Of a stretch of 64,000 bases of DNA, positions 1 to 51,800 are shown piece by piece (positions within the stretch are counted from its first letter, which is position 1; each line of letters opens with the position of its first letter). The DNA lies in the NCBI GenBank assembly GCA_000708835.1, contig DF237269.1, positions 39,061 through 103,060 on the forward strand, written 5' to 3'. The DNA is from Klebsormidium nitens. Taxonomy: Eukaryota > Plantae > Klebsormidiophyceae. The notes beneath the pieces are model-generated. The model was not told where the DNA came from. It was given only the letters and a program-made list of their open reading frames with translations, and did no database searches. Position numbers and translations under genes: made by a program.

Positions 1-100
1 ACGTCGCCTCCCGGCCCTATAATCTCTCAACTTCCTCGTACGTTCACAATGCAAAGCACGCCCAACGTCACCCTGACGTCAGCAACGCATTTTCCCGCAG

Positions 101-22500: not shown

Positions 22501-24121
22501 GCTGAACCGCAAGGGGGGGGACAATTTCCTCTCTCCGGAGACCCCCTCCCCGCCGGAGTCGCCCCCTCTGAACGCGCTGTCTGAGGATGACGTCAGCAGG
22601 CCCCTGAAAGCTGACGTCAGCAAGCTCCCGGCGCTGATGGAAGCAGAGCGGCCGAGGCGGTTGCACAGAGAAGCAGCACTGGCGCTTCCAGCGCCGGAGT
22701 GGGGGGGTGCACATGAGGAGGGGTCGCCTCCCCCGAAGGAGGAGTGGGGGTTTTGTTCCAGGAAGGAGGAGCCTGTTCACATTGACGCTGAGAGGGCACA
22801 CCACAGGGATGTGAATGGGGCACAGCCAGGCGACGAGTCAGCGGTGGACGAAAAGCTGTCAACATGGGAGTCAGATGCGCTGGGGGTGCCCAAGTGTGAA
22901 CTGGACGTGGTCGAGAGCCCACCTCCCCGGGTGACAAGGAAACGCACGCGCGTCGACACAATCTGGCCCGAGGCGCTGACAGCACAGCTGATGTCAGCGC
23001 ACACGCAGGTTCCGGCGACGATCGAGGCCCAAGTTGCGGCACTGAGCCCGAGGCAGGACCAGAGGGGTGCCGCTGCTGACTGGCACTCAGTGCGAGCGCA
23101 GCCCCCCGGAAAGTTGCGGTGGCTAGGGCCGAGGGCGCATGCGGTTTGGGGGGGGCTGCCACACTCAGCTGAGCGTCCGATCGCAGAGCGTCTGGCGAGC
23201 GGTTCTGTTTTGGGAGCTGCGGACCAGCCCTTGATAGATGGGGATGTAAGGGACTTCCCGTCCAACTCTGGTGGGGGTGAGAAACCCTGCGGCGAGCACC
23301 CCTCCAGGAGAGAAGATGAGCGGGGCGGCGAGGCGGCAGCGGCAGAGCTGCGGGCGCGGGCGGCAGCGCAGCGGAATGAAGCGGAGGAGCTGCGGGAGAT
23401 GATGGAACGGAAGCTGCGGCTGGCGGATAGTTTGGAGGCGCAGGCGGCGGCGCTAGAGACCAAGTGCCACGTGGATGGCGAGGGGAAAGAGCGTCCAGAT
23501 CTGCGGCGGGCTAAATCCGCCGGTATGTGTGCGGCAGAGGAGGGAAAGGGACGTTTGGACGTTGGGAAAGGGGAGCCGGACGTTTCAGGCTCCGGGATGG
23601 CTGGCCTGGATGACCAAATGGCGGGTTCGGACGTATGGAAGGTACGTGCGGACACGGGGAAAGCTGGTGCGGACGCCGAAATGGCTGAGCTGGCGGGTCT
23701 GGATGCTGAATTGGCGAGCGCCAAAGCTGTTCGGACGTGTCCGGACGGTTTGGGGACACAACTGGAGGACGGGAGCCGGGGCAAGATGGACGCTTTCTGC
23801 TTGGATTCGGACACATTGTGGAGGGATGCGGACGCAACTGCCGGGGTTTCGGACGCGAAGGCAGCTCCTGAAGGGGGCTCGTGGGTGAATGGCAGTGTCA
23901 GGAAAGTGATGATGGCTCATGTGTGGAGTGGTTGGGGTTCGGAGGGTTTTAGCAAGAAGGGCTCTGCGGGGGACTTTGCTGGGGAGAGTGCGAATGATGA
24001 GGGAATGGAGACGGAGCCCTGCTTTGAAGGGGCCCAAGAGAAGCGGTTGAGAGGCTTTCCTTCCTTGGGTGGGGTATCGGACGAGAAGAGAGACGTTAGG
24101 GGCTTGGGAGCGAACTGTTGA
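19560..24121 (+). CDS. Methyl-CpG-binding-domain protein with a C2H2 zinc finger, an unassigned helical domain and a long acidic low-complexity tail (~1068 aa)
   Basis: Proposed exons 19560-20649, 21387-21467, 21735-21831, 21986-22001 and 22199-24121 are phase-consistent (3207 nt). MBD-like segment DMPKGWLMDIRYRGSGNRVDKLWTSPEGVQLRSIKECESFL at about 20211-20335. C2H2 CPTC-x12-H-x3-H at 20388-20450. The N-terminal FPHLDLRAFTHDELLL resembles the N-terminus of plant MBD8-type proteins as I recall it. The middle exons are less certain. Confidence 0.75.
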
Positions 24122-28549: not shown

Positions 28550-31500
28550 TCAGAAATGCTGCCACTGATGCGCATCCGCCCCCTCGTCAAAACCCTGCGA
28601 TGGTCCTAGAACACTGAAGTCGAGCTGCCGCCCATACTTCTCCTTTCGCCGCTCGTCAAAAACGGCCCAACTCTCCGTCTGCACCAAATAAGGAAGCAGA
28701 ATTTCCGTTGGAGTAGTCAAGTAGCAAAGCTTGCTGAGTCCTGTGCACTTGACGAGCTGGCTGAGATTCGATCGATCTGCACTGGAAAAGTGTGCAATTG
28801 ATGTATCAGCTCGCAGCACACATGGCAGGCTTCTTTGAACTTGAATTAGAACGTCCCCGAGGCAAAACGGATGGATCCAGATGACAGACGTTCTGAAATG
28901 TTTGAGCGCAGCCCTGGCTCGAGAGACATGCACAGGGCCAATAACTCATTCCGCCAGCAACTTTCAACCTGCCTCACTTCCACTACGAGGAACACGCAGC
29001 ACGCGGATTTCTGTATGTTCATATGTTCGTGCACAATTTCGTTTAACATAGCCACTCTTCGTCTCTTACCATACTCGAGACATAGCCCAGCGCACCTCCA
29101 CACTTCTATCTCGAAAAGTTTTTCATGTGTACAAAGTGAATGAAGTTCCGCGGTCACGACTGTTCCTGTGTTCCGGAACGAAGGCAAACAACCCTCACCT
29201 CTCGTAGATTCTCCACGGTGATTGGGTTCCCGTGCAAAGCGAGCGTGCACAGAGAAGCGCAGTCTCGCAAAATTCCCGGTGGTACTGCGCTTATATTGTT
29301 GTTGCTTAGCCGCAGCGTCTGCAACGGAAGGAGACAATCAGCGATATGCAAAGGCGAGGCAATGATAAGCGAGGCCATGAAAAGTCGTGCAGGCATGAAG
29401 ACACTAAAAGGTAACTTCGTGTCAGCACCTACGACAAAATGATCCAAAAGTTTAACGAGTGCAAGGCTCAGATGGGGACAGGAGGCTCTGACCTTTAGCT
29501 TCAGGAGGGCGTTGAAACTGGACGGTATCCTGTCGACGAAGTTCCCCTCGAAATCCGCCTGCGAAATAGAGCACGCTCCTTGAGCTCGGGAAACGCCGAG
29601 CTTTGAGTCGTTACGTTTGCGCACGTCTTGTTTATTGCATTATCTTGTTCGTTTCCAAGGTGCCAATCTGGACTGGTTGTAGCCAAGGACCAGCTGATAA
29701 AGTCCTAGAATCTGAAACAGAAGAAGAGAACGTTCTGGTTACAAATATAAACCCCGACATCACAAAAGGGAAGAGCTTTAACGAACGTAGCAGCGGTTTT
29801 GGGGTGGACGATGCGTCAAGGAAACATTCGAATGCTTTTTCTTTGCGAAGCCTCAACCGACGTTTTCACCACTTGAAGAATATAACGGGAAAGCGTACTT
29901 CAAACCGGCTAGCTTCTCATTGAACCCTAGATACTGACGGTACGGCAGATCCACTGAACCTGTCCGTACTCCATGAGTCGTTTTTCTCTTGGAATCGACC
30001 GGTGGAGACGACTTATTGTGTTTCCAGCTAAAACGTGGCCAGTCAGAAAGGCGGAGCATCTCACTCGTCCAAGCGGCTTAAATCCTGGAGCGCCTGATGA
30101 AGCCGCGTTACTCATTTTTCAGCCTGAGAAGCTCCCGGTGCAATGTTAAGCTCTTACCTCAACTAGGGAAGAGCAGCTTCCGAGCGTGGTCGGGAGCTCC
30201 TTGAGCCTGCAGTTGAACGCCAATGAACGGTTGAATTTCTCAATGTTTTAAAGAAAGATCGTAAACGACGGATAAACGCTTGTACAGGCTTTCGTCGGCC
30301 TTGAAGCATTATCTGGTGTATTATCACCGCTCAATATTCTCATATAAGACCCAAAAAAATCACCGTCGCACAGTAAGGATACGGGAGGACTCAGCATCTA
30401 CCACCTTCCTGGAAGGGCTCGACAAACTCCTCAGATCAGAGGACGTCTTTGGAAGGCCACTCATCACGAACTCAGACAGTCTACGCATCAAACACGACCA
30501 TGTCAAGCGCACGGGTCCCTGCTTACTTGTTACTCGCCGCCTCCAGCCTTTCCAGCCCGGTTAAGCGGCCAATCTCTTCCGGAAGACTCTCAAGTTGGTT
30601 GTGGGAGACGTTGAGATGGCGGAGCGATTGCAGGTGGCCTATCAATGGAGAGGCGGAGAGCAGTCTGCATGTGCACTGAGCGCTGTTACATCGCAACAGA
30701 ACCACGCCTGATAGTGGCCAAGCTTATCGATGCTTCTGTTCTTCTTCAAGCTTGTTCTAAGTCGTTCCTTTTTGAATACACAGCGTAGATGCATACCACA
30801 GAGGAGTGCCCCAAAGCTGTATCCTGATAAATGCTTCAGAGCAACGCAGTATGCCCTAGAATACTGGCGGAATATAACGTACTTATGTCTACGGCTTTTT
30901 GTGCTGAAATAACGTTGTTGAGATCTCGACCGTTATGTCATGCAAAGTGCGCATAGTTGAGAACTCCAAGAATCATCAGAGAACATGGACGCCTCAGATT
31001 TAAGGTGCTATGTACCTTCGGATTTTGTTAACTTCGTTACCCAGTGATACTTTGCCCAATTGAAGACTCACCTGTTGTCGTCCAATGCTAGAACAGTGAG
31101 CTGTCGTAGGCCGCAAAGTGCTTCCCAGGGGACTCCCTCCGAAGTGAGCTGGTTATAGCTTAACCGGAGACGCTGCAAAACACAATTCTTCTTCAAAGCT
31201 ATCCAAAAGGAACAGTGATTTCGTTTTTCTGGTCGTTGATTGATGCCGATGACAGGGGACCACAGTTCTTCGTAGGCGATTCTTGGAGGTTATGTTGCGG
31301 TCTCCATTTCACCAATAATTGCAGCTGTTTCAGAAAATATTGTGAAGGAAATAGGTAGAAAATGGAGGAGACTCCGATCTAGAAGGTCAATTCGAGACAT
31401 TGATCATGCGAATGACAAGACTCGCCTCAGATAAGTTCCGGCTCAGAAGATCATCATATTGGCAGTCAGGAACATGACCAGTCCTCTTCAAGCAGCTCTG

Positions 31501-34363: not shown

Positions 34364-37300
34364 GCGTCTTACCCTCTTCCGGGAAGGTTAGGCCTGGGAG
34401 AGGCGCTCCCAGTTGCAAGCAGGAAGGCATTCTTGGGCAGGTCGGGACTGTCTCAGGGGAGGTTTCCTTCCTGGAAGAATTCGCGTGGGTAAGAGTTCTC
34501 CCATATCTCAAGTGGTGGAATTCTGTACAGTCTCCCTCAGTGGGTCCACAAATTCCATACACCAGCATAAAGCAGGTTCTAGATCCCTAACGATCTACGG
34601 TCCGCAATGAATGAGGGTTTGCTCAGGAAGAATTTCTCGAAGGCCTAATTTCATATGAGTTCAAAGTCACCCAAGTTCGAAGAAATAATATCTCTCGAAG
34701 TAAGAGAATTCGAAGAAAGAGAATTTTAGCACGATCACGCGCAATACAAATTATGGTCAAGCAAAGCCCCGCTTTGGCTTGATGATGTCGCAGGTGCTTA
34801 CGTTCAGAAGCTCTGTGTCCAGGTTAGCTGACACTGATCCTGAAAACCCGCAGAACACTTTCAGACTCGTACGTACTATCTTACCTCTGATTGTTTTCAG
34901 GGTGGGAACTCAGAATTCAAGTCTTTCAAAAAGATGAAAGAAGAAAGGACAAACTGCGAATCTGCGCATTTTTTTCCCTCATTGCCTCCTTTCCCTTCTT
35001 CTCAGCGGTGTCCGGGCCGAGTCAGACTTGCCCCACAACAACGGCATCTCCCAACCCATCACAGTCCCTGCAAGCAGCACCCCTCCCAAATCCAAAAAAA
35101 GCGCCGACAAACGCGCCGAAGCAAACGTGCGTCACGCCGGAAGCGAGGGCTCCGAGTCCCGCCAAAATCTCCGCTCCGAGGAACCGTCGAGCTCGGACGA
35201 TGAATCCGGCATGCCTGCGAGCGTGCACTTGGCATCACGAGCGGCAGCGGTAGCTTTTGCGGAGGCCGCGGCACGTAATGCCGCGGCAGGGGGGGAGCAT
35301 GTTGCCGACGAGATGCCGGTGGACGACGATTTCTTACCGGGGAACACGACATTGGGGGCGCACGAGGGGGACTTTGCGGTGCGGCTGGCGAATGCGAGCG
35401 TTGCGGGGCTGACGGTGATTACCGTGCATGGAGTGGACCAGGAGAATTTGCTGGCGGACGTGTCGAGCACGTTGAGCTCAGCGGGGCTACGGTGAGGGGC
35501 TGGAGACTATCATTTCTAAGTAGACTTGGTAGGTACATATGGGCATTTAAGGTGCTTGGAAGCTTCCAACCATAACCAACCTGGTATGCGTAAGGCAGTT
35601 GGGAGAGCAGCCCCAATGTTTGAGGAAAGCACATGGTGAGGTTTTCTGTGGTGAAGGATCTAGCCGGTTCCATGTAGTGAGACGGAAACTTTACCTATGC
35701 CATTCTGGGGCCCTCCACCAAATTGCGCGCTGTGCTATATACTTGTTTCAACAGTAGGGCCCTGAAGCAGTTTTGAAGAATCTTTGGTTGAGATATGATA
35801 TTTGACCAGATTATAGCAGCACATCAAGGGATAAGCTTCCAGCCTATCGTTCCCCACCCATCGCACCATGTACCTTACATTCAATCAGTGGCATTTGCAC
35901 AGCTAGACCACCTTGAAACGGGGCTAGATCACATTGACAGCACCTGATACTCCCTTGTTCTGTCCCAACTAGTGTGGAGAGTGCCCGGGCCGACATGGAA
36001 GAGGACTCCAACCTGATCCTCGACATTTTTGTGGTGCGCGATCTGGAGACGCAGAAGGAGCTTTCCCAGGAGCGCTTTTCCGAGATCCAGGACCGCATCC
36101 TCACAAAGCTGGCGGTGCGGCGCAACCGCATGAAGCCTGTGTTGGGGGACGACCCCCGCCTCTGGGAACAGGTGCAACTTCACAAGTACACGGACTGCTT
36201 TGCTGGGTATTTGGAGGCAGTGGACCAATGTTTGATGCTGGTTGTGACTGAACGTGGATCCCTTTTCAAAGAGCATTGATTTCGTCAATCAGATGGAGCA
36301 CTAAGCTTTTTGATGCCAAGAATGAGTTGATGACAGTCAATGAGCATTGAGACAGAGTGTGTCAGCAGTGCTCTGCTGACTGCATGTATACACTTGCTTT
36401 CTGTCGGTCAATCGAGCTGAGAAATCCTGCACTGCCCATATTTCGTGCGGGTGAACCACTCTGTTAACGCGCTCTGTCCAATATCCTACCTTCTCACCTC
36501 AAGCTCAGAGAAAAGACTCTTAAGAACATTCCCCTCACGCAGGTCAACTTCCTGATTGCGACACTGGACAAGGTGGTCGTCAAGCACGCGGGCACGGAGG
36601 TGCACGAGGCGGTGCAGTATCTGATCCGCGGCTTCGACGGGCTGCGCGAGAAGGAGGACATCCGCAAGCGCGCAGAGCTGCTGCGCTACATCACGAACAT
36701 GGACTGCCCTACGGTGAGGCGATAGGCTCTGGGGTTGGTTCATGGCTTACGCGTTCAGGCCAAGGGCTTATATGGTGCTGTAAGAAAGAGCAAAGCACGC
36801 AGAGCTGCCTCGCTACATCTTGAAGGTGGACGGGTGCCGGGGTTGGCAGTGCTTCAGACCGCTGGGAGGTCATAGCTTATGCTGACTCGCCTTAAGAGAC
36901 TTTGTCAAGCCAGCAGAGTAGGGGGTGCAAGGGGTGGTCTGCAAGTTGGGGAACTTCCCGGTTAATCTCAAACACTCAAAGCACAAAATACTCCATGGTG
37001 AGCCCGCAGTTTGAGTGACGGGTACATCCCCCCCTGCTTGAGGCACAGGCCTCGTCAGTATCATCTGAAAAAGAGCATGACAGCACGATTCCCCACGGCT
37101 CTCTTTCTCAACACTCAACACACCTTCGTCATGCCCCATCCTCTTCGCTTCGCGCCTCAACATGCTCATCTCAACACACCCTTACTTCTTCCTGGTGACC
37201 ACACAAATGCCTATGCTCGAGCTAATAGCTAATTTAAGCCTTCCTTTCCATTGACCGCAGCTGAACGCCGTCGTGCGCAGCCTCTACAGCTACTCCTCCC

Positions 37301-40300
37301 TCCTCAACGCTGTTTCTCTGTCCTCCTTCCCTATCCTTCTCATATAGCATCCCCCCTGAGTCATGTGCCAACCTACTTCCCCTTCTCACTTTATGTTCCT
37401 CACTACACCCAATGCTACACCAATCGGTCCCCTCACTCCATTCGCTGCACAGCTGACGGCCATTGTATGAGTCTACTAAATCTATGTTTCCCTCGCTCCT
37501 CAACTCAGTTCTTCGTTCTCCTCCCCTCAGTCTGTCCAGGTGCTTTCCCCCCTTGAATCACACGCCAGCCTCGATCCACTCCCCCTCCTCACAATGTCGT
37601 CTCCTTGCACTCAAATCTCCTGCAGTACCGTAGTATAATCCTCACATCGTTCCCTGCGCAGGTGACGGCCGTCGTGCGCGTTCTCTACATCTACTCCTCG
37701 CTCCTCAACGTCGCCGACGAGGCCCACAAGCACCGCCTGCGCCGCGAGGAGATCTGGCTGTCCCGCGGGGCGACCCCCACGTGGGAGGGCTCCTTCGAGG
37801 GCACGCTCCGTGAATTCCGGAACGCCGACATCGGCCCCAAAGAGCTGCAGCTGCTGTTGAACCGCCTGGAGTACAGCCCGGTGTTTACGGCGCATCCGAC
37901 GGAGGCGCGGCGGCGCGAGATCCTGACGACGCTCCACCGGATCTTCTACATGTGCGAGAGGCGGGAGGACAACCGGCTGAGCCCCGCGCAGAAGAGCAAG
38001 GTGGAGCAGGAAATTGAGGCCGAGGTGAGGGGGTGGGGACATGTTTTTTGACATTTTTTGCATCTGAATTTAGGTATAGATGTTGTTAACACCTGACCCT
38101 GGGCTGCGAAGCGTGATTGCGTTTGTGAGCAGATGAGAGAAAGGCAGACTCACGTCAAGGTTCACTTCTCCCAAGCTCTACATTCGAAAGAGCCCCCTGG
38201 GGGTCTATCAGAAGAACTTACGAAGTATAGCTTTGGGGTTCGAAATATTCGAGCCCATCAGTTGTGGTGCTCGAAGATGGGTCCATCAACAGTCAAGCGT
38301 AGTGTAGCTGTATGGAAACCCGTCAGGGTAGTCGTGTGTCCTGTGTCTACTTTTGTCTGCGGGCAAGTGCATTTACACCTGCGCATATGGTCTGGCGAAG
38401 CTCTCCCCACGACTTGAACTTTCGAGCTCGACAATATGACATATGCAGCCTTATCGTGGTCACTTCCGCCATTAGAGAGCAATTCAGGTTTCCTGTTCCT
38501 GTGTTTGTTCTGCTTATTCGTGGTCAAGCGTCGAGTCGCATTGACGAGCTCCTGCAACCTGCGCCATTGTGTTTGTTACGAAATACGAACCTTCTAAAAA
38601 CCCGATTTTTAAGTCGGACGCTCAAATCTGCAGGTCTACGTGCTGTGGCGCACAGACGAGATGCGGCAGCAGAAGCCGACGGTGCTGGAAGAGATCCAGG
38701 CGGGGCTGGACTACTTCCGCTACTCGCTCTTCGAAGCAGTCTGCACCACGTACCGGTATGCAGAGAACAGCCTGGAGGTGAGCGTCCGAGATCATCTGCG
38801 CTTCTTCAAGCTCGTTGGAGGACTCACTGGAAAGTCCATTGAGCATATAGAGCTATTCTTACGCGGGCCCCTTGTAGGGGCACATTGTCATCGCACACAA
38901 TGCAGAGTAATGTGTTTCGATTTGAAAGATGAAGTTGAGCAACTTGAGCCTTACAGTCCGTTCAACGATCTCGAGTCGGCCCCTAGACGTCTGAATACGA
39001 ACCTTCAGTGAAACGTCGATGCAAGTCCTGATAGGACACTCGTCAGACGTCTCATTAGCCGTAAAATGCCGACGTGAAGAGAAAGTCCTCACAGCACTTC
39101 GCTCAAACGTCCTGATTTGATCAACACGTGGCGAGTTTACAATTTACATGTTCGCTATCATTGCAGCACGTCTACCCAAAGGCTGGCGTGACGCTGCCTA
39201 GCTTCATCAAGTTCGGCTCCTGGATCGGAGGCGACCGGGATGGCAACCCGTTTGGTGAGGGACTTTGCCGCTTTTAACGTTTTTCCTTAGGCGCACACAG
39301 TCTGTATTCCTACATGAGCAGGCGACCAAGCTACTTGGTATGTCAAACCCCTTTCTGAGATTGTGGTTACGGTACCTCCCCTTGAAGGGCGAGGGTTGGA
39401 GCGGACAGGTTGCGGTCAGATTAGGAAAAGAGGGAGAATGGCGCTTTCCGGCTGACCGAGAAAAGTTCCCCCTCTGCTCCATGACCCGCGACTCTGTGTG
39501 CAATCTTTCAAAGATGACCGAGGCAGCCACGCTCCCTCAGAGCCGCTTCGTCCACGCTTAAACTTCGCTTGTTCGTCAACACCCCTGAGTTCTGATACCC
39601 TAAACCCAGCTTATAATAACCATCATTTTGAATTCCACTCCCAACACGGCTCATCGAACCTCCCACCATTTCCCGCAGTCCTCCCAAAGACAACCGAACC
39701 TCCAGAGCCGCCTGGTGCTCACGGAGTCCATCCGGTACTCATGTAACGACTAATTTTCCAAAGTTGAGCCAAAACTTTGACCGAGAAGCTCTATCGTGCG
39801 ACGGGACCCTCTCTGACCCGCCACATTTCTGTGCAGTTCTGCCCAAGACCACCGAAACCGCGGCGCTCCTCCAGAGCCGGCTGGTGCTCGCGGAGTACAT
39901 CCGGCGTGCGCGCGCGTGCCAGGACATGCTGACGCACTCCGTCCTCATCTGCAAAGTCAACCAGGAGCTGCTGGACAGCATCGCAGAGGACAAGAAACTG
40001 ATGGCCCGGATCCCCGCGCTGAACAAGGATATTGAATTATATGCGCAAGAGCCGTACCGGCTGAAGCTGCGCATGATCCGGCACCGCTTGGAGCAGAACC
40101 TGCGGATCATAAACAAGCGGCTCAAGGCCATTGGACTGGAGGATGAGGTGAGGGGCGGCGGACGAAGATTCGATAAGCAGCGTGCCTGAGGCTATCATCG
40201 TCACGCCTCCTTATCATTGTTGAACTCCTCGAGCTGCGAATCGCCTGCGTCTAACGACGGACTGGGAAAGGAAGCATCGGGAATGCTGTTACTCACATCG

Positions 40301-43300
40301 ATTGGGTTCAGACCAGAGCGGTAACAGTTGGACCGCGGATTTTGCGCGTGGGCGCTTGTACTTGCGTGGGTCAGGTTGGGAGCAGTTGTGTTTATTTTAA
40401 TTCATCTTTTATTTGGGTTTACCCTAGACGGATCGAAGCTCTGGTCCGTCCCCTGTCCGTCAAATAAAAATCAATGGCCATCATACCACGAAAGCATGCC
40501 AGGGTAATTGCTGACCACTTCCGAGGCCTGCCCGTTATCAGGACCACCCTATTGAAAGGACATAAAGCTTCAGAACGGATGGTCTGACAAAGTTCGCGAA
40601 CCTCGAAGACTCATCCCTTTCCTTCCCATCCCAACCCCGTCCCCATGGACCTCCCCAATCTGTCTCAATTTTTGTAGTGGTGCCTCAACCAAGTCTTTCA
40701 TGGTCTCAGATGCTGATTGACATCGAGTTCAATTTAGACGAGATCCTCCATGCAACCCCTTACATACAAAATTCCTGATTTATGAGTTTTTTCCTGGTTT
40801 CAGATGCTGATTGACATCGAGTACAACTTGGACGAGATCCCCGGCGTCGACCCCCGCGACGACTGCTACTCCGACGAGGCCGCCTTCATTTCGGACCTCC
40901 GCCTCATTGACGCGTCCCTGCGCGACCGGGGGGATGCCAGGCTGGCGGACGCCAAACTCAAAGACCTGGTAGGTTACTTTGAAAACCTTCGAGTAATATC
41001 TAGTTTAATATGGACTTACAGTTGCTCCGCTTAGCCATTCTAAGCTAGCAAGCTTAGGGGCTTGACCCTTGTCCCGTCGCTGTTCTGAAGATAGGGGGCT
41101 GAAGCTCAAGAGCGTCCCTCCATTTGGTTCTGTCCGACGATAAGAAAGTCGTGGTAGCCGCAAAAGGCGGCTCTCTCTTGTACTTTGACCATCCACAAAA
41201 TCAGTCTGAGATCGAGGACTACCCAAAGAAAGACGGATGGTGAATCTTTGGGGACCAGCCACAGTTTATAGCTCTTTGCGGGAAGATTTTTGTCAGCTTT
41301 TCAAAGTCCCGGAGCATAGTTCCAGATCTTGGAACGTGCGATTGACGATGGAAGGCATCCAACGGCTGAGGATTGCGGACCACAGTGCGGAACGTAAGAG
41401 ACACTGAATAGGCAGGTTTGACGAGAATCGCTGTAAACGGGACCCTTTTTCTCCAGGTCCGCATGGCGGAGACCTTCGGCTTCTACCTCATGACGTTGGA
41501 TGTCCGGCAAGAGTCGGATGTGCACACGGACGCCGTGTCCGAAGTGGTGGGCGAGTCGGTCCTCGGCTTGTGCGCCAACTACAAGGACCTCAACGTCGCG
41601 GAGCGCATCGAGCTGCTGTCAGAAGCCATTGCGTCGCCGCCACCCGTCGAGCGTATTGAGGTGAGCTCGCCCGCGACTTGCTTCTGTCTTTCCGTTGTCC
41701 TCTTGTAGTCCGGTTCATTGGGTTGCCTGCGCCTTTGTGTTGTTTCATAATCATTGACTTGAATATGAAAGCGAGCCCTTACTATCAAGCGCAGCGGAGG
41801 TAAGCTGGTGGTATTCTGAGTGAGGACACCCGCCCAGTGAACTTTGTGTTTATCGCCATTGCACGCGACTGGTGCTTCGGATCTCCTCGCCCGGAAACTA
41901 AAGCAAGCATATGGGTTTCTGAAGAAACTTTGATCCGGCTTCTTTTGTCTAGAGTACTCCGGGTTACCCTGAGAGAGGGCACCTTCACGCGTTCACTTTC
42001 AGCATGGTCACTTCAAACTGAGGGTCCTTCCTTGGGTCTGAAGGATCTCAAGATCATGAAGAAACAACCGCCTTTCCCTTCCATTTCAGGAGATCTTGGC
42101 CAAGCTGAGCGAGAGCACTCGCCAGGTGGTGGAAGTGTTCATCGCGATCGCTAACATCATCGAGGCCATCAGCCCAGGGGCGGTCTCGTCCTACGTCATC
42201 TCCATGACGCGCAATGCCAGCCACGTCCTCGAGGTGAGCTCAGAGTGACGTCACTGGTCGTCAGTCTCGCTTTCCTGTGGCGAAACGAATTGTTGATCGG
42301 TCCTATATTGCACTCGCCCTTTGGAACCGGCGGCCACTTCTAAGAAGGGAACCTGTTGGATGTAGGGTCTGAGGGTGTGATAACGATCGTGCAGATTAAG
42401 AGAAGGGGACGTCTTGAGAGTCACTGCCTTCAAATTTGATCTGACGGTCGTTAGAACCGTATGACATCAGCATTGGTAGACTGCCAGACTAAATAACATC
42501 GGCGGACTGGTGCGTTTCGTCCAGACTGAATGACGTCAGCATCGGCAGATTGGGTCGTTTGGTCCCAGGTGTTGTTCTTTGCATGGCTGTCCTGCCGCAA
42601 ACTCAGCAACTCGCAATTCAGCAGTGTATCGACATTGTGACCCAGCACATTTTTACTTCCAAACCCAGTCTCAAAACCTGGGTCTGAATTAACCCGTAAC
42701 TTGTCCGTTCTCCTCAGGTTATGTTCTTGGCGTGGCTGTCGTGCCGCAACATCGTGGGGCGCACTGCCGAGGGCAAGTGGTACTCCCAGATTACCGTAGC
42801 ACCGCTCTTTGAGACTATCCCGGATCTAGAGGTTATGCCGCAGGCGCTAACCCAGATCCTGACCAACGACACGTACAAGAGTCTGCTGGCTGCGTCTGGG
42901 AACATTCAGGAGGTGAGTCTGTCACTTATGCAATTTTTGGGTTACGGTAATTGTGAACCTTGGCATGCTTTGTTGGGGTCTGGACAAGGGTAAGATCCAA
43001 TCCGAGACTGCCGAGACTTTGATCAACCCCCTGACAACCGGGCTCCAGAACAGGGCGTCTGTAATTGCGATTCCAGCCAAAGGTACGGGAACTTCCGGCA
43101 CTCAACTGTGACCAAGAAGACAGCTTAAACGTTCCGCTTGAGAGTCTTCCAGGGCGGAGGGCTTCTACAAGCCTTGTCCAACTTCGTGATCGTATGCGCT
43201 TTGGATGGCCAGGAAATGGATTAAAGGCCTGTGCTACGCTCATTCGCCGGGCCCGTTTCCGAAAGCCTTTCTGGGAGACGATCCTGCGTGTTGCATCGTT

Positions 43301-46300
43301 TATATTGTGCTGTCACTCTCCCTGAAATTTTTTTTGGTCACTGGGACACGTGCTTTCACTGCTTCAAACTTAACAATGACTTCTGGCTGTTCTCCTCCCC
43401 AGGTCATGCTCGGCTACTCGGACTCGTGCAAAGACGGCGGCATCACCGCCAGTGCCTTCAACCTCTACAAAGCCCAGCAGCTGCTGCGGCAGATCAGCAG
43501 CGATGCGGGGGTCCAGTGCCGGATCTTCCACGGCCGGGGGGGTACGGTTGGCAGGGGCGGCGGCCCCACGCACGAGAGCATTTTGTCGCAACCCCCTGGA
43601 AGCGTCCAGGGGACCATTAAATTCACGGAGCAGGGGGAGGTCATAACTTATCGGTATGGGAACAGCGAGACGGCGACGTATGAGCTGACGGTGAGCGAAG
43701 CTTTTTGTACTTGTGACCGAGCCTGTCAAAACGTTTGTTGAGATCTTGTCCTGCGCGTCAGTAAAGACAAAGAGCTGAGATTACGTTTAGTCGAGAAAGT
43801 CTGTCTTGGGGCGGACGAGAAAGCGGCTATTTCTCTTGGCAACAAACGCTTTCTGCTATCACGAGTTGCTCCACAGCATAAACGCTCGCAGAAGTAGCAC
43901 GGTGGTCGGTCATTTAGCAGCAGGCAGCACCCCTGCTCTCCTGCTTCATCCCCGGAAGCGGAACAGTAGCAATGACATCATTTTGCTGTCACAATCACCA
44001 CCACTTAAGTTCCTTGAAACTCGTTGATTGCAGGTGGGTATTACGGGTCTGATGAAAGCGAGCCATCCGGCGACTAGGTCGATTCCAGACGACAATCCCA
44101 AGGTGACCATTGCACCCTTGCTTGCCTCGTTCTTAACCTTACCAGCAGAGCCGCTCTTTCCAGTTCCAGGTTCCCGTGCATGATTTCCAGAAGTCAGCCG
44201 AACCGTAAACCTGGCTTCTGGATTCTCCAGTGTTACTGGGAGTTGTTCTCTTGGAGCAAATCCACAATCCGACCTTTGGAGGCGCAGTCCATACGTGCCA
44301 CATACAACTTTAAGGGCTGCAAAGTAGAGTTGGAGTTTCTCAATCTGTTAACTTCCAAACCGCTGAACAAAGCTCCCCTAGTAGTGTTAAACTTGCTCGT
44401 GAGTCATGCGTTGCTCTAACCTTGACTCTTGCGTGCAATCCGCAGTACATCGACATCATGAACGAGCTTGCCAAGGAGGGCGAGCGGGCGTACCGAGAGC
44501 TGACGGACGCCACCGAGGGCTTCTACGACTATTTTTATGTGAGTCCCTCCTCTGCACAGCTTTAGGGTTGCGTCTAAAAACGCTTTTTGAGCCTTCTGAA
44601 GCGGACAACCTAGCTATAACCCGCTTTGAAATGCCTTTGCTTCTCGTTTTGATGGCGTACCAGCTGCTTTGTGACCAGAGCAGCTTTGTCACTACCCTCC
44701 TGACCGGGCAATCGTCTGCTGCAACGGAAGCAACAGGCTGGTATTGAGATGGGCCTCTTTCTGCGAACAAAAGCTGCTGGCAATCTGCACTATATGTACT
44801 CCTGGATAGATACCCCTGCCTCTTTCTCCTCTCCAATGCCCGACACGGTCGATGTTTAGCAAAGCGACTAACGCCCTGCCCACTGACGCCCTCTTCGAGA
44901 TTTGAAACTGGCATTCTTCCAGCGCCCTCTCATGCTCTCATTGGAGAGGCAAACACTCCTGCATTAATACCCCGCAGGAGGGCACGATTGTATTCGTCAT
45001 TGCGTTCATGAACACAACTATTTCTTGACTCAATCGATGCTCCTCTTCAAGTGGCAAGAGAGTTCCTCAGATAGTGGTCAAGTTTGAGTCTCAAATCCTG
45101 ACACCCCGCTATCTCCTTCGCCTTACCGCAGGAGGGCACGATCGTGAACGAGATCGGGATGATGAACATGGGCAGCCGCCCCGCGCGGCGCAAGGTCGCA
45201 GTCCGCGACAAAACGTCCCTCCGCGCGATCCCGTGGGTGTTCGGCTGGGCGCAGTCGCGGCACACGCTCCCGGCGTGGTATGGCGTCGGCAGCGGGATTG
45301 CGGCGTACACGCAGGGGGATCCCTCGAAGATGGCGGAGCTGCAGGAGATGTACCAGAACTGGCCTTTCTTCCGGACGTTCCTGAGCAACGTCCGGATGAG
45401 CCTGCAGAAGGCGTCCATGGAGATCGCGCGCGAGTACGCCAGGTGAGGGGTTGCTCTTCTAATCTTGTACTTTTCTTTCCGTAAGTTGAAGGGAGCTCTT
45501 AGGTCAGGGTACCTCGGTTTGGACATCGCCAAGGGTAATAGTTGGGACGAAAATTGTGGCGGAGAGAGTATGAAGTATGAAGCAATTGGACAGTTGCGGG
45601 AAACAAGACGTTCAAAGTGGGGGTGCTTGCGGGTCAAACGCCAGACAGATCAGGACGAGCGACTGAATGGTGGTGTCACAGTGCGGAGTAAACGGTTGGG
45701 CCTTCCAGGCGCCCTCCAAATAGCAATCCAAGGCGAAGCATACCACCGCGATTATGGGAGCTTGCTAATCTGCATTCCGACGGACCGACGTTGTCTGCCG
45801 CTTCAGAAGCAGATGAATTCAGCTGTCAAAGCATTCACGAGCGGGTTTAAGCATCCGACACAAATGTGGCCTGCTTCCCCGGGGCGCATTTCCGCTGCCC
45901 ACATCAGCAAGCGCAAGTGACGGGTAACTCAGACTGTCACTTGTTCCTGCAGGCTCGTGTCGGACCGCATCACGGAGAAGCTAGTGTTTGGTTTGGTGGA
46001 AAAAGAGTTCCAGCAGACGATCGCCCAGATTTTGGCGGTCTCCCAAATAACCCGGCTGCTGGAAGACAACCGCACGCTGGAGATGTCCATCGACGCCCGG
46101 CGGCGGTACCTGGATCCGCTCAACCACATACAGGTTAGCGCTTACCCTGAATTGCTGATATGGGATGGTGTGCTTAGCGGCAAAGAAGGCCTTTAGTGCA
46201 CACAATTCAGCAACTTAAGCCAGACGTGTTGCGTCAAATCATACACCCTGCAGATGATCCCGCAGTCGATGACCGGAGTTTATGTGCTATTCTGAAGCTT

Positions 46301-46490
46301 CTGGTCTGCGAATTGTGCATGCTAACAAGCCAAGCTTCGATTCATGCTAACAACCAAGCTCGACCGGTAGGTGATCTTGCTTGGCCGCCGCCGCGACTCG
46401 TCCTTGTCTGAGGAAGAACGCCAGATGTGGGTCGGGCCCCTTCTTCGGTCCATCAAAGCCATCTCTAGCAACATGCGGAACACTGGTTAG
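34364..46490 (+). CDS. ppc: Phosphoenolpyruvate carboxylase with an N-terminal ACT domain (>1170 aa; true start not resolved)
   Basis: Exons: 34364-34488 (tentative), 35006-35491, 35973-36171, 36543-36713, 37662-38024, 38634-38777, 39167-39254, 39837-40147, 40804-40968, 41457-41660, 42090-42233, 42718-42912, 43403-43690, 44034-44102, 44446-44538, 45132-45442, 45953-46133, 46371-46490. All phases are consistent from 35006 onward. PEPC motifs: [98 protein letters not shown], terminal MRNTG*. Confidence 0.95.
35410..36115 (+). other. ACT domain (ACR/GlnD-type) encoded across two exons at the PEPC N-terminus
   Basis: [28 protein letters not shown]|[46 protein letters not shown] fits the ACT pattern T.I.V.G.D..GLL..I...L...GL.V..A.....D.F.V.D. 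Confidence 0.8.
36790..36831 (+). repeat. Intronic degenerate copy of the 3' part of PEPC exon 36543-36713
   Basis: gcaaagcacgcagagctgcctcgctacatcttgaaggtggac versus exon gcaagcgcgcagagctgctgcgctacatcacgaacatggac (36664-36704). Confidence 0.85.
39666..39735 (+). repeat. Intronic degenerate copy of the acceptor and 5' part of PEPC exon 39837-40147
   Basis: ccatttcccgcag|tcctcccaaagacaaccgaa..cctccagagccgcctggtgctcacggagtccatccgg versus ccacatttctgtgcag|ttctgcccaagaccaccgaaaccgcggcgctcctccagagccggctggtgctcgcggagtacatccgg. The copy has a frameshifting deletion. Confidence 0.9.
40706..40747 (+). repeat. Intronic degenerate copy of the acceptor and 5' part of PEPC exon 40804-40968
   Basis: tcag|atgctgattgacatcgagttcaatttagacgagatcc versus tcag|atgctgattgacatcgagtacaacttggacgagatcc. 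Confidence 0.92.
42565..42601 (+). repeat. Intronic degenerate copy of the acceptor and 5' part of PEPC exon 42718-42912
   Basis: ccag|gtgttgttctttgcatggctgtcctgccgcaa versus tcag|gttatgttcttggcgtggctgtcgtgccgcaa. Confidence 0.85.
44968..44991 (+). repeat. Intronic short copy of the acceptor and 5' end of PEPC exon 45132-45442
   Basis: taccccgcag|gagggcacgattgt versus taccgcag|gagggcacgatcgt. Confidence 0.7.
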
Positions 46491-48879: not shown

Positions 48880-51800
48880 ATGAAGTCACCGCAGACCTCA
48901 GTGCAAGCGGCACTGAAAGTGGTGGTGGTCCTTCTATTCATGAACAAACTTGCGGTGGCAGACTATCTTGCTATCAACTGTGGTGGTCTCACATATCCTG
49001 ATGGCAGCATTCCCCAGTAAGTGGTGCACCAGGCAGCCGGTGGTGGATGACTTAGTCTTCTTGCAGTTTGAAGACGCTTGTAGAAAAAGAAAGGGCACTC
49101 TCTGTGTTGAATCTGATTGTCCTTGTTTCTCAGACAGCTTATAGAGGAAAAGCTCAATGCAATCTCTACATGACATCATTGCTCAAGCTCTCTCAGCAAT
49201 TGGAAGCTGGATCTGACACATTCCTCCATTGAGATAATATTGACGGGCCCCAGACTTTATTTTGTTACATTTTTGCCTGTCATACTGTGAAAAGAAAGAC
49301 ATGTCACCATCAAGAATCCTGTAGCAAAAGTGCTTGCCATCAAATGTCATCTTTCCTGAATTGGAAGGACCAGACGTGACATCAATGTGCTTCCTGACAC
49401 CAGCTCCTGACACCAGCAATCTCTTTGAGCTGAGAGCTGTGCTCTTCCTTCAGGTACTATGACGGTGTTACATATGGCCCTGGGCCCGACTACAAACCTG
49501 CTGGCGATCATACAGACTCTGCTGGAATCAACTGGAGATCAGACAGTTTCTATTCTGGCACTTCAACTCATGTCACTGATTACCGGGGCATCAACTATGC
49601 AAACACTAATGACCAGCTCACCTACAGAACTGAGCGATATGGTGAGCAACTGGCTCTTGGTGATCTCTGGATTTGGAACTGGATCTCATCCGTTGCTCAA
49701 TATCTGTGGACAGTCTGGTTCCAAGGTTGGCACAAAGCAGTTACGAGGTTTGCTTTCAACTCCCACTAGGTAGCCTCTTGATAGGCTGTTGTGAATTTTG
49801 CGTCAAGCCGCTCCAGAACAGGCTTCAGGTGCTGTCAAGGTTCTTGACCATCTTTCTTGCTGCGTCTTCAGGTATGGACTTCTACTACAGTCTCAACCTA
49901 CCAAATGGTGCTTACACCGTTGAGATGAGGTTTGCAGAGACCCGCTTCAACAGTGCAGGGTCGCGAACATTCACAATCTCAATCAATGGACAGCAGGTTG
50001 AAAGTAGCTTGGACATCTTTGCGAGGGCTGGAGGTCAGAATGTTGCATACACGAGTCAGTATCAGGCTAGCGTGAGCAATGGTCTTCTGGATATCTTCTT
50101 CAACTCAATCGTGTATGAAGCCAAAGTAGACGCCATCAGGGTTTTCTCCAATGGAGGCGGAAACCCTCTACCGGGTCCTCCATCAACTGTGAGTCTCTTC
50201 AAATCTCCTGACGAGACCATCTTTTGGCAGTAAGCTGGCAATTCTTTGGAGCGATACCGTTTGACAACCTGCTAGGATGCAGTTTGGCAACCCAATCTTG
50301 CAGCCAGCTATTCAGTTCTATCAGGACTTTTTCTTTGGCAAACGTTGTAAGTTGCAAGTTAGTGATGCTTGCGTACTCACATGGACAATCATGTTGCATC
50401 TTGGCACATTCGGTTACCTTTTGAGGTGTAAGCTACACACTCTTGAGGAGTATGCGGAGTCAGGTTCTGTCTGAGGATCATTACTTACTTCCCTACATGA
50501 GCAGCCGTCTTCACTTGCCTTTTCAACGCTGTTCTTCTGGCATCAACCAGGCAGCTGACAATCTATCTTGGACATTCCAGATAAGCATTGCTGCTGGAGG
50601 GAGCAGTGACAAATACTACAAGGGAGGCTCGACAGGTGCAACACAATCAGCCACCTACCCTAACTACCGCAGCGGCGCCCTTTTTGAGTATCTTCTCAAC
50701 CTCCAGAACGGCGACTACGTGGTCCAGTTCGCATTTGTGGAGCCTCAGTTCACATCCCCTGGCTCGCGTTCATTTGACGTCTACATTCAGAACTTCAAAC
50801 GGATCTCTGGATATGACATCGTTGCAAAAGGGGGCAGCGCAAGCAATGCGGTGACAGTGCAGAGGACTGTGCACGTTTCTAATGGCTTGCTCAGGCTCAA
50901 GTTCCAAGATGCTGGCTCTGATGCCATAGTCTCTGGCATCACTGTCTCCCCACTCTCCAGGTGAGCTCCCGATGGTTTGTAATCCAGAGTCAGTCTAGCC
51001 AAGAACCTCCTGTACTTTTGTTTCTGGCGAAGTCTGCTCTTGGATCCATTACAGGCAAGCACGAGGTGTTAGTATTTGCAGTGTGCTTCTAATGAACACT
51101 CCGATTGGAGTTGCTATCCAATCCCTCCACATGCATACAGTTCAATCTGTTTTTCTATTGTCAAGAAAACTTGCAGGCAAGCTCCAGGTCAGCCTGGTGT
51201 GCGTGAGGCTGCTGCTCAATACCCTGGCCAATGTCCAGGTCTTTCTCATGCCTTGCCGTGTCAGCTTAGGTGTCCGTTGAACATTATCATGCTTCGTTGG
51301 TAGCACTTGGAGCTTTGGCATCTCACATATGCGCACACTTCAGTAGCTCGCTTTGTTTCTGGACAAATTTGTGACCAGCTTCGAGCCAAAATCTCAGGGA
51401 ATCCCTAGCTCAGAAGAAGGTCGATCTTCTGACCCTCCTTCCACAAAAAATCAGAAGAAAGCAACCGACAATCATTGTGTGCTGCAGCTCAACAGGGGTT
51501 CAAGTCGCCATCAACTGCGGCGCCCCACTGGACGTCCTCTCTGGCCTGGGCATCATCTTCCAGAAGGATGTCTACAACTCTGGCGGCAACTCGGCTATCA
51601 CAAAGCCGTACGAAGTGTTCCTTCCCTTTGGCGGCTTCTGGGACGACTTCCTCTACACCAGCGCTCGCACTGGTGGCGCCTTCTCCTATTCAGTGCCGGT
51701 GCCAAATGGGGCCTACCAAGTAGAGATGCACTTTACAGAGACGGAAGGCAAGCAAGCAGGCCAGCGCGTCTTCAACGTGAACGTCCAGGTAAGGAGAGGT

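Follow-up and report, generated by a model that had tools for sequence, protein, structure and literature searches.

In reviews and recent genome papers, plant PEPC is treated as two clades, PTPC and BTPC (e.g., PMC8566536). Enzymes of the first clade (maize, Arabidopsis PPC1-3, the Flaveria structures) end in QNTG and begin with a SIDAQ or SFDAQ phosphorylation motif, whereas those of the second (Arabidopsis PPC4 type) end in RNTG, carry no N-terminal regulatory phosphoserine motif and contain a long mid-protein insertion, which in the Marchantia protein lies between two BLAST blocks at about residues 310-475. One survey of the family left genes of Marchantia, Spirogloea and other taxa outside its classes, under the label "PEPCase superfamily" (PMC8784020, Table 1), and the transfer candidates of Peng et al. 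(2012) include the Physcomitrella protein A9SLH0. Our literature searches found no description of an ACT-PEPC fusion or of a third plant PEPC class.

Here we describe a gene of the streptophyte alga Klebsormidium nitens that fits neither clade, located in a window of 64 kb (the whole stretch of DNA analysed). Its product joins an N-terminal ACT domain to a PEPC core, and we call it and its orthologs ACT-PEPC, with the Ceratodon protein KAG0580420 as type member. The closest known system is the PEPC of sulfur-oxidising gammaproteobacteria (Sulfurivermis fontis, Thiohalobacter thiocyanaticus, Thiohalomonadaceae, Kaarinaea, Ectothiorhodospira, Thioalkalivibrio and Halothiobacillus), which shares with ACT-PEPC the motif SDSCKDGG, the ending MRNTG and all catalytic motifs, but is about 930 aa long and has no ACT domain, leader or introns. 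We put at roughly 80% the probability that ACT-PEPC forms a third class of PEPC in the green lineage, with a transferred gammaproteobacterial core and an ACT domain, expressed from 17 exons.

Gene structure and transcripts

The gene lies on the + strand at 35208-46490 and comprises 1109 codons in 17 exons, separated by 16 introns that are all GT..AG. The stop codon occupies 46488-46490; the first in-frame ATG, at 35208, is given as a predicted start because the transcript continues upstream of 35100 by 470 nt or more. Splice junctions were picked by comparison with six orthologs, using short junction peptides for the choice, and the exons were searched against databases individually, not as a joined protein. 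An earlier note on this DNA had placed the gene at 36543-46490 with at least 16 introns. The PEPC part is indeed found there, but the gene begins further upstream, with two exons encoding the ACT domain, and the count of 16 introns is right for the whole coding sequence, the narrower interval holding 14.

Exon 1 (35208-35491) encodes about 70 residues of unknown role, followed by strand 1 and helix 1 of the ACT domain; it aligns to the ACT region of the orthologs, and its donor (35491|GT) is confirmed by spliced contigs. The second half of the domain and a linker are encoded by exon 2 (35973-36171), as judged by ortholog alignment and spliced contigs. The PEPC core starts in exon 3 (36543-36713), which contains an 18-residue peptide quoted in the earlier note, and continues through exon 4 (37662-38024), with the catalytic TAHPTE at 37887-37904 and a Pfam match; the junctions of both are contig-confirmed. 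Exon 5 (38634-38777) and exon 6 (39167-39254), the latter with a 13-residue motif, combine Pfam matches with spliced contigs, both being bounded by GT..AG. Exon 7 (39837-40147), also with contig-confirmed junctions, covers the site of the long insertion of plant BTPC, which is absent here. At exon 8 (40804-40968) the acceptor is confirmed, and a loose contig end continues into exon 9 (41457-41660). Exon 9, exon 10 (42090-42233), exon 11 (42718-42912), exon 14 (44446-44538) and exon 16 (45953-46133) have Pfam matches and homology-guided GT..AG junctions, and exon 13 (44034-44102) was likewise placed by homology-guided GT..AG. The catalytic core lies in exon 12 (43403-43690), with a 10-residue motif at 43412-43441 and a 14-residue loop; this exon matches Pfam at 165 bits, has PEPC matches in the PDB and is 65-75% identical to gammaproteobacterial sulfur oxidisers. 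Exon 15 (45132-45442; Pfam, 151 bits) contains a 22-residue peptide and, on the + strand at 45240-45284, a 15-residue peptide beginning FGWAQSR. Exon 17 (46371-46490) encodes the C-terminal MRNTG, directly followed by the stop codon. All four peptides quoted in the earlier note are thus present in + strand stop-free stretches at the positions it gave. The neighbours of the gene are eukaryote-like, with an LRR gene on the - strand (29.1-29.6 kb) and malectin exons on the other side (49.7-51.0 kb).

Spliced contigs from four runs in four studies reproduce introns 1-7 exactly, with 0 mismatches; read support covers these seven, and introns 8-16 are homology-guided predictions. On the same contigs ACT exons 1-2 are joined to PEPC exons 3-8, placing the fusion on one transcript, and individual contigs (4278 and 4355 nt) cover both ACT and PEPC exons, in agreement with the length of the full predicted mRNA. 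ACT-PEPC is an expressed nuclear gene of Klebsormidium nitens. The best non-plant similarity of the protein is to gammaproteobacteria, as would be expected of bacterial contamination or of a very recent, undomesticated insertion. This explanation is contradicted by the 16 spliceosomal introns and by the spliced transcripts of four independent studies. Furthermore, the G+C content of the gene is similar to that of the remainder of the window, the flanking genes are of LRR and malectin type, the Spirogloea orthologs are intron-rich (gene spans of 8.7-8.9 kb, from source names), and ACT-PEPC orthologs sit on plant chromosomes. We regard contamination as scarcely credible, in line with the earlier note, which had dismissed it.

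Catalytic motifs and placement of the PEPC core

With the exons scanned separately, PF00311 (PEPcase) matches 12 stop-free stretches, colinear over profile positions 60-880 of 919. The translations contain TAHPTE, GYSDSxKDxG, FHGRGGxxGRGG and LRAIPW...QxR, as well as three residues of the aspartate/malate site (K, R and N); the roles of these catalytic and inhibitor-site motifs are presumably those assigned from E. coli PEPC structures. The same catalytic and inhibitor-site positions recur in an alignment of the moss ortholog with E. coli PEPC. With its catalytic motifs intact, the product would carboxylate PEP with bicarbonate to give oxaloacetate. Among the fetched proteins of at least 800 aa, the combination of SDSCKDGG and MRNTG occurs in 106, which are gammaproteobacterial PEPCs and ACT-PEPCs; the corresponding motif is SDSGKDAG in maize and SDSAKDAG in E. 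coli, as checked in PDB matches, and the earlier note had quoted both correctly. That note had also counted the C-terminal end among its proteobacterial signatures. The RNTG ending is present, but it equally marks plant BTPC and the PEPCs of E. coli and other bacteria, and therefore does not by itself separate proteobacterial from bacterial-type plant enzymes.

The protein belongs to the same enzyme family as PTPC and has the same catalytic residues, but it ends in MRNTG rather than QNTG, and its N-terminus consists of a leader and the ACT domain, with no SIDAQLR-type phosphorylation motif. Its resemblance to BTPC comprises the PEPcase fold, the catalytic motifs, the RNTG ending and the absence of the phosphorylation motif; BTPC differs in having SDSGKDAG and the long insertion and in lacking an ACT domain.

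To place the core (exons 3-17, 946 aa) we used pairwise identities on one 37-row MAFFT alignment, rotated to bring each reference to the first row, together with four-point sums of Kimura distances worked by hand. Four QNTG-ending proteins occurred among the exon-4 matches of at least 800 aa; in three of these (P0052, P0054 and P0144) cluster members bear names, which are bacterial in two cases (Vicinamibacteria and Chromatiales) and those of a plant in none. The plant PEPC references were therefore drawn from metatranscriptomes, where they were located by a degenerate GYSDSGKDAG pattern. The PTPC reference scored 1665 bits against Arabidopsis PPC3, and the PTPC references carry both SIDAQ/SFDAQ and QNTG.

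The core is 66% identical to moss ACT-PEPC, 52% to that of the prasinophyte Pterosperma, 51% to Sulfurivermis and Thiohalobacter, 40% to Salinisphaera, 33% to Marchantia BTPC and 31% to both PTPC and E. coli. In the same alignment E. coli is 44% identical to BTPC and 41% to PTPC, the two plant clades are 45% identical to each other, and the E. coli and Sulfurivermis types form two deep bacterial PEPC subfamilies that are 36% identical. By these identities PTPC and BTPC group with E. coli-type PEPC, not with ACT-PEPC. Four-point sums, which like pairwise identities can mislead if rates or composition are unequal and which compare unrooted groupings, favour ((window,Sulfurivermis),(BTPC,E. coli)) at 1.75 versus 2.71 and 2.91, and ((window,Sulfurivermis),(Salinisphaera,E. 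coli)) at 2.11 versus 2.38 and 2.39. The internal branch that nests ACT-PEPC among gammaproteobacteria is short (~0.13). The core thus lies outside both plant clades (31-33%, against 51% to bacteria and 66% to moss), where nesting inside either would have spoken against the earlier note. Its proposal of bacterial acquisition and domestication is likewise supported by the identities and four-point tests; the transfer was probably old and probably ran from bacterium to alga.

Searches with single proteins and exons point the same way. Moss ACT-PEPC finds Sulfurivermis by BLASTP at 851 bits, compared with 313+100 for BTPC, 358 for PTPC and 353 for E. coli, and its alignment to Sulfurivermis is near gap-free (49% identity, with 44 gaps in 962 columns). 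For exon 4, identity to the moss protein is 68%, with the next full-length match at 44%; the values for Sulfurivermis, BTPC and PTPC are 44%, 29% and 23%, and no plant-type sequence appears among the best 150 exon-4 matches from 1.84 billion representatives. Exon 7 is colinear with Sulfurivermis at 36% identity and gives no significant alignment with either BTPC or PTPC. The best bacterial matches that bear names are Halothiobacillus, Ectothiorhodospira, Thioalkalivibrio, Chromatiaceae, Thiomicrospira and Thiohalomonadaceae, which fall in the lithotroph groups named in the earlier note.

A divergent copy of the known plant and chlorophyte BTPC (PPC4 type) would account for the RNTG C-terminus and for the missing SIDAQLR-type motif. 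This reading is contradicted by the lower identity to Marchantia BTPC than to Sulfurivermis, by exon 7, by the absence of both the BTPC insertion and SDSGKDAG, and by the clustering of BTPC with the E. coli type; moreover, Marchantia paleacea, Calypogeia, Diphasiastrum and Spirogloea hold both genes. We consider it highly improbable. It is because these four species have ACT-PEPC beside true BTPC that we regard ACT-PEPC as a third class, as the earlier note had suggested.

Bacterial likeness could also reflect slow evolution of an old vertical paralog, inherited for example from an organelle ancestor or an early eukaryote and mostly lost, with no horizontal transfer at all. The existence of two deep bacterial subfamilies, the unrooted comparison and a family age at least that of the chlorophyte-streptophyte split are compatible with such a history. 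Against it, the eukaryotic members among named matches come from the green lineage only, and the four-point tests put the core nearer to Sulfurivermis than Salinisphaera is, nested within gammaproteobacterial diversity. Furthermore, the named bacterial matches are all gammaproteobacteria, with no alphaproteobacterium or cyanobacterium among them, although most listed matches are nameless. A vertical paralog is therefore an unlikely account, though the least unlikely of the alternatives weighed here.

The ACT domain and the distribution of the fusion

Neither exon 1 nor exon 2 by itself gave a Pfam ACT match, because intron 1 splits the domain. In the orthologs ACT-family matches are found, exceeding the curated cut-off in five of the nine scanned, and the N-terminal domain matches the Pfam ACT, ACT_ACR9_3rd and bHLH ACT-like models; the window exons align to this region. 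The modelled ACT domain of the Mesostigma ortholog (pLDDT 78) has the elements E-E-H-E-E-H with a beta-alpha-beta-beta-alpha core, and the window pieces lie within the alignment. Its best PDB matches are the ACT-like domains of GL3 and maize R and the serine-binding ACT domain of E. coli PGDH. Read through this model, the N-terminal domain is predicted to have the ferredoxin-like (beta-alpha-beta-beta-alpha-beta) ACT fold. The domain is of the same type as in plant ACR and bHLH ACT-like proteins; the difference is that ACT-PEPC carries just one such domain, attached to an enzyme of metabolism.

The closest full-length relatives are other members of the clade, 59-60% identical by tblastn. Proteins of 1100-1200 aa from Ceratodon, Spirogloea and Chlorokybus, together with P0180 (a metatranscriptome protein) and P0185 (a EukProt transcript), are about 60% identical and colinear with the gene, also across the N-terminal region, and the Mesostigma ortholog is colinear at 50%. 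Matches to the moss protein add Marchantia paleacea, Calypogeia, Riccia, Diphasiastrum and Mesotaenium, and also Pterosperma. ACT-PEPC therefore ranges from a prasinophyte and Mesostigma to mosses, liverworts and one lycophyte, with no seed plant or fern among the matches in the ranked lists; it was probably lost in seed plants.

Alternatively, the gene could have passed from a green alga to gammaproteobacteria, or been gained separately by prasinophytes and streptophytes with convergent ACT fusion. The core is about as close to Pterosperma as to bacteria, which would suit either scenario, and for this reason a single green origin leans partly on the shared ACT fusion. However, an intron-less, ACT-less form occurs in hundreds of gammaproteobacterial species of several orders, a Pterosperma query ranks every streptophyte ACT-PEPC above all bacteria, and the four-point sums prefer ((window,Pterosperma),(Sulfurivermis,Salinisphaera)), at 1.61 versus 2.01 and 2.02. 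In addition, the ACT domain occupies the same position in prasinophyte and streptophyte proteins. We judge these scenarios very unlikely.

Proposed history and significance

The sequence comparisons are best explained by an old gammaproteobacterial transfer and a later fusion with an ACT domain of the plant ACR type. The PEPC core would have entered an early green alga from a gammaproteobacterium, been fused to a host ACT domain and gained introns, with vertical inheritance thereafter and loss in seed plants. The encoded polypeptide consists of a brief N-terminal leader, a single ACT domain of ACR type and a full PEPC, which would make oxaloacetate from PEP for anaplerosis. Through the ACT domain a small ligand, probably an amino acid, may control the enzyme, or the domain may control oligomerisation, tying carbon flow to nitrogen status. 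The fuller proposal, of an undescribed third class whose sulfur-oxidiser-like core is independent of PTPC and BTPC, made sensitive to amino acids or nitrogen by an early ACR-type ACT fusion and then lost in seed plants, is one that we hold with the balance tipping slightly in its favour.

For the annotation of the family, ACT-PEPC genes can be misfiled when PEPCs are classed by a PRK00009 match or by whether they end in QNTG or RNTG. A third class with a bacterial affinity of its own and an inbuilt ACT sensor would revise the received history of an enzyme central to C4, CAM and anaplerotic metabolism and provide a dated example of bacterial gene gain and domain fusion in the green lineage. It would also offer an easily testable case of carbon-nitrogen coupling in algae and early land plants.

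Gene structure and expression

The PEP carboxylase (PEPC) gene lies on the + strand at ∼35.2–46.5 kb of the window, where the Pfam PEPcase profile (PF00311) matches 12 stop-free stretches in colinear profile order and the catalytic exon matches the solved enzymes of maize, Arabidopsis, Flaveria, and E. coli. With intron placement guided by six full-length relatives, the gene has 17 exons and 16 introns, every intron being GT..AG with strong consensus; its reading frame runs from the first in-frame ATG (35208) to the stop codon at 46488–46490 (exon total 3327 nt; 1109 codons). All peptides quoted in the earlier note were found where it had placed them. Exon 3 begins precisely at the gene start given there, 36543, and two further exons lie upstream; the note's count of at least 16 introns holds for the whole gene, introns 1 and 2 falling before 36543.

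Contigs from four public runs (four studies) align to 35100–41000 with zero mismatches and omit exactly the predicted introns 1–7 (+ strand junctions 35491/35973, 36171/36543, 36713/37662, 38024/38634, 38777/39167, 39254/39837, and 40147/40804). The library type of these runs is recorded as "RNA?", and their coverage is confined to exons (word share 0.26–0.30; exon share 0.29), as would fit RNA. Exons 1–8 lie together on single contigs of 4278 and 4355 nt, a length consistent with a 5′ UTR, the full ∼3330-nt reading frame, and ∼370 nt of 3′ UTR; a loose contig end past exon 8 continues into exon 9, and introns 8–16 are placed by homology and splice consensus only. The transcript begins at least 470 nt upstream of 35100, so ATG 35208 is only a candidate start codon, although the best one. 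Between 34630 and 35207 the frame is open from 34938 and holds no ATG; there may be an upstream exon, or the 5′ UTR may be long and contain upstream reading frames.

The flanking stop-free stretches, with an LRR match upstream (29154–29621, − strand) and two Malectin-matching exons downstream (49673–50230 and 50443–50961, both + strand), probably belong to receptor-like genes of plant type. A 572-codon open frame at 22403–24121 (+ strand) has no Pfam match; G+C reaches its window peak, 0.63, at 22–24 kb.

An ACT domain ahead of the carboxylase

Scanned separately, exons 1 and 2 have no Pfam match, because intron 1 splits the ACT domain. The N termini of orthologs match ACT, ACT_ACR9_3rd, ACT_4, and the bHLH ACT-like model of plants; nine were scanned, and five exceed a curated cut-off for an ACT-family match. 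This region aligns residue for residue with the last part of exon 1 and the first part of exon 2. The Mesostigma domain was modelled from an alignment that included the pieces from the window (mean pLDDT 78); the best PDB matches of this model are the ACT-like domains of GL3 and maize R, as well as SerB2, Rel, and the serine-binding ACT of E. coli phosphoglycerate dehydrogenase. Thus, one mRNA encodes a leader, an ACT domain, and PEPC. By type, this ACT domain belongs with those of plant ACR and bHLH ACT-like proteins. In the Spirogloea protein P0186 (SM000126S26288), 28 inserted residues stand precisely at the window's intron 1 site (columns 58–85 of A1, the alignment of the window's ACT exons with orthologs); they probably represent a shared intron left unspliced in that gene model, a hint at a common intron 1 position.

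A green-lineage class distinct from PTPC and BTPC

A search with exon 4 against 1.84 billion representative sequences gave as top match an environmental fragment (94% identical), followed by a moss protein (Ceratodon KAG0580420, 1180 aa, 68%), below which matches fall to ≤47%; the plant motif SDSGKDAG occurs in none of the listed matches of at least 800 aa. P0001, a 175-aa gene call on a 93.8-kb JGI metagenome contig, is 94% identical to exon 4 and 87% identical over a stretch running past the exon; it probably represents a close Klebsormidium relative, called on unspliced DNA.

The best matches to the moss protein are ∼950–1215 aa long (mostly 1100–1200) and come from land plants (Ceratodon, two loci; Diphasiastrum, Calypogeia, Riccia, and Marchantia paleacea), algae (Spirogloea, two; Chlorokybus, Mesotaenium, Mesostigma, and two MMETSP algae, one clustering with the prasinophyte Pterosperma), and metatranscriptomes. 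Every listed match below these is bacterial (45%–49% identity), and those that carry a name all belong to gammaproteobacteria (Sulfurivermis, Thiohalomonadaceae, Kaarinaea, and unnamed gammaproteobacterial MAGs). The moss-query matches outranking bacteria include no seed plant or fern, although a BTPC search recovered a large number of angiosperms. With Pterosperma as query, all streptophyte ACT-PEPCs outrank all bacteria. The gene in the window is colinear with seven ACT-PEPC proteins over their full length at ∼60% identity (Mesostigma 50%), and the placement of its protein fits a streptophyte alga. Spirogloea orthologs span 8.7–8.9 kb and are therefore intron-rich too. The Ceratodon loci, on chromosomes 4 (P0002/P0153) and 1 (P0179), are 87% identical, with several annotated isoforms of 1019–1180 aa.

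Plant-type (PTPC) and bacterial-type (BTPC) references were taken from metatranscriptome contigs via a degenerate GYSDSGKDAG pattern: three PTPCs (one with SIDAQ and an IQNTG end, two with SFDAQ and an IQNTG or MQNTG end), one of which scores 1665 bits against Arabidopsis PPC3, and a single BTPC, which has named relatives in many plants, all called "phosphoenolpyruvate carboxylase 4." Among its relatives are true BTPCs of Calypogeia, Diphasiastrum, Marchantia paleacea, and Spirogloea, which also carry ACT-PEPC; these are therefore two different genes, in agreement with the third PEPC class proposed in the earlier note. In BLASTP comparisons, moss ACT-PEPC is closer to Sulfurivermis (851 bits, 49% over 962 columns) than to BTPC (313 + 100 bits, 37% and 33% in two blocks), PTPC (358 bits, 32%), or E. 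coli (353 bits, 30%); E. coli PEPC itself reaches 512 + 198 bits with BTPC and 630 bits with PTPC. Window exon 4 scores 108 bits against Sulfurivermis, 34 against BTPC, and 33 against PTPC, and exon 7 scores 60 bits against Sulfurivermis with nothing significant against BTPC or PTPC. QNTG ends also occur in bacterial PEPCs (P0300, Vicinamibacteria; P0312, a Chromatiales MAG), so the literature's QNTG/RNTG call of plant type or bacterial type is unreliable.

Our literature searches turned up neither an ACT-PEPC fusion nor a third class of plant PEPC; the sequences are already public under the automatic names "ACT domain-containing protein" and "phosphoenolpyruvate carboxylase." The plant family has been described as two clades (Wickell et al., 2021), both traced to gammaproteobacteria in a study whose list of transfer candidates includes, without comment, a protein of Physcomitrella (Peng et al., 2012). 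Unclassified "PEPCase superfamily" genes of Marchantia (1), Spirogloea (4), Anthoceros (2), and Physcomitrella (10) were set aside (Shu et al., 2022).

Bacterial affinity, origin, and expected function

When one genome from each bacterial species was scanned with patterns taken from the query itself, which biases the outcome, the catalytic exon was closest (65%–75%) to Halothiobacillus, Guyparkeria, Ectothiorhodospira, Thioalkalivibrio, Chromatiaceae, and Thiomicrospira. Identities were then taken from one 37-row MAFFT alignment (first row rotated), with exons 3–17 weighted by length as the window core (946 residues). The core is 66% identical to moss and 52% to Pterosperma ACT-PEPC, 51% to both Sulfurivermis and Thiohalobacter, 40% to Salinisphaera, 33% to BTPC, and 31% to both PTPC and E. 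coli, which bears out its proteobacterial rather than plant signatures. Sulfurivermis is 48% identical to Salinisphaera, 34% to BTPC, and 32% to PTPC; BTPC and PTPC share 45%. E. coli PEPC (L201, compared with P0208, P0339, and L089) is nearer BTPC (44%) and PTPC (41%) than Sulfurivermis (36%), so gammaproteobacteria have two deep PEPC subfamilies. Four-point sums with Kimura distances favored ((window, Sulfurivermis), (BTPC, E. coli)) at 1.75 (alternatives 2.71 and 2.91), ((window, Sulfurivermis), (Salinisphaera, E. coli)) at 2.11 (2.38 and 2.39), and ((window, Pterosperma), (Sulfurivermis, Salinisphaera)) at 1.61 (2.01 and 2.02). The picture from these unrooted distances, as distinct from likelihood, is of two deep subfamilies, with PTPC, BTPC, and E. 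coli-type enzymes on one side and Sulfurivermis-type gammaproteobacterial enzymes on the other, with green ACT-PEPCs as one group among the latter.

The bacterial relatives are ∼930 aa long and, unlike ACT-PEPC, carry no ACT domain. In the simplest history, a gammaproteobacterial ppc gene would have entered an early green alga, fused to a host ACT domain, gained introns, been inherited vertically, and been lost in seed plants. Vertical descent would fit identities to the window that drop with species distance (moss 66% by alignment, Chlorokybus ∼59%, prasinophyte core 52%, Mesostigma 50%), and seed-plant loss would fit the ranked match lists.

The N terminus of the moss ortholog, seen in fragments, is rich in Ser and Thr and may serve organelle targeting, whereas the alga has a short, Ala-rich leader. 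All catalytic motifs are intact in the window PEPC, and an active enzyme is therefore expected. Also intact are the lysine, arginine, and asparagine of the E. coli aspartate-inhibitor site, which we take from E. coli structures to bind inhibitor aspartate. The usual role of ACT domains is amino-acid binding at dimer interfaces, or dimerization itself, and the closest folds to the ACT model include both kinds. Our best guess is that the PEPC part would act as an anaplerotic enzyme, to which the ACT part may add control by an amino-acid or nitrogen-status signal, or control of oligomeric state.
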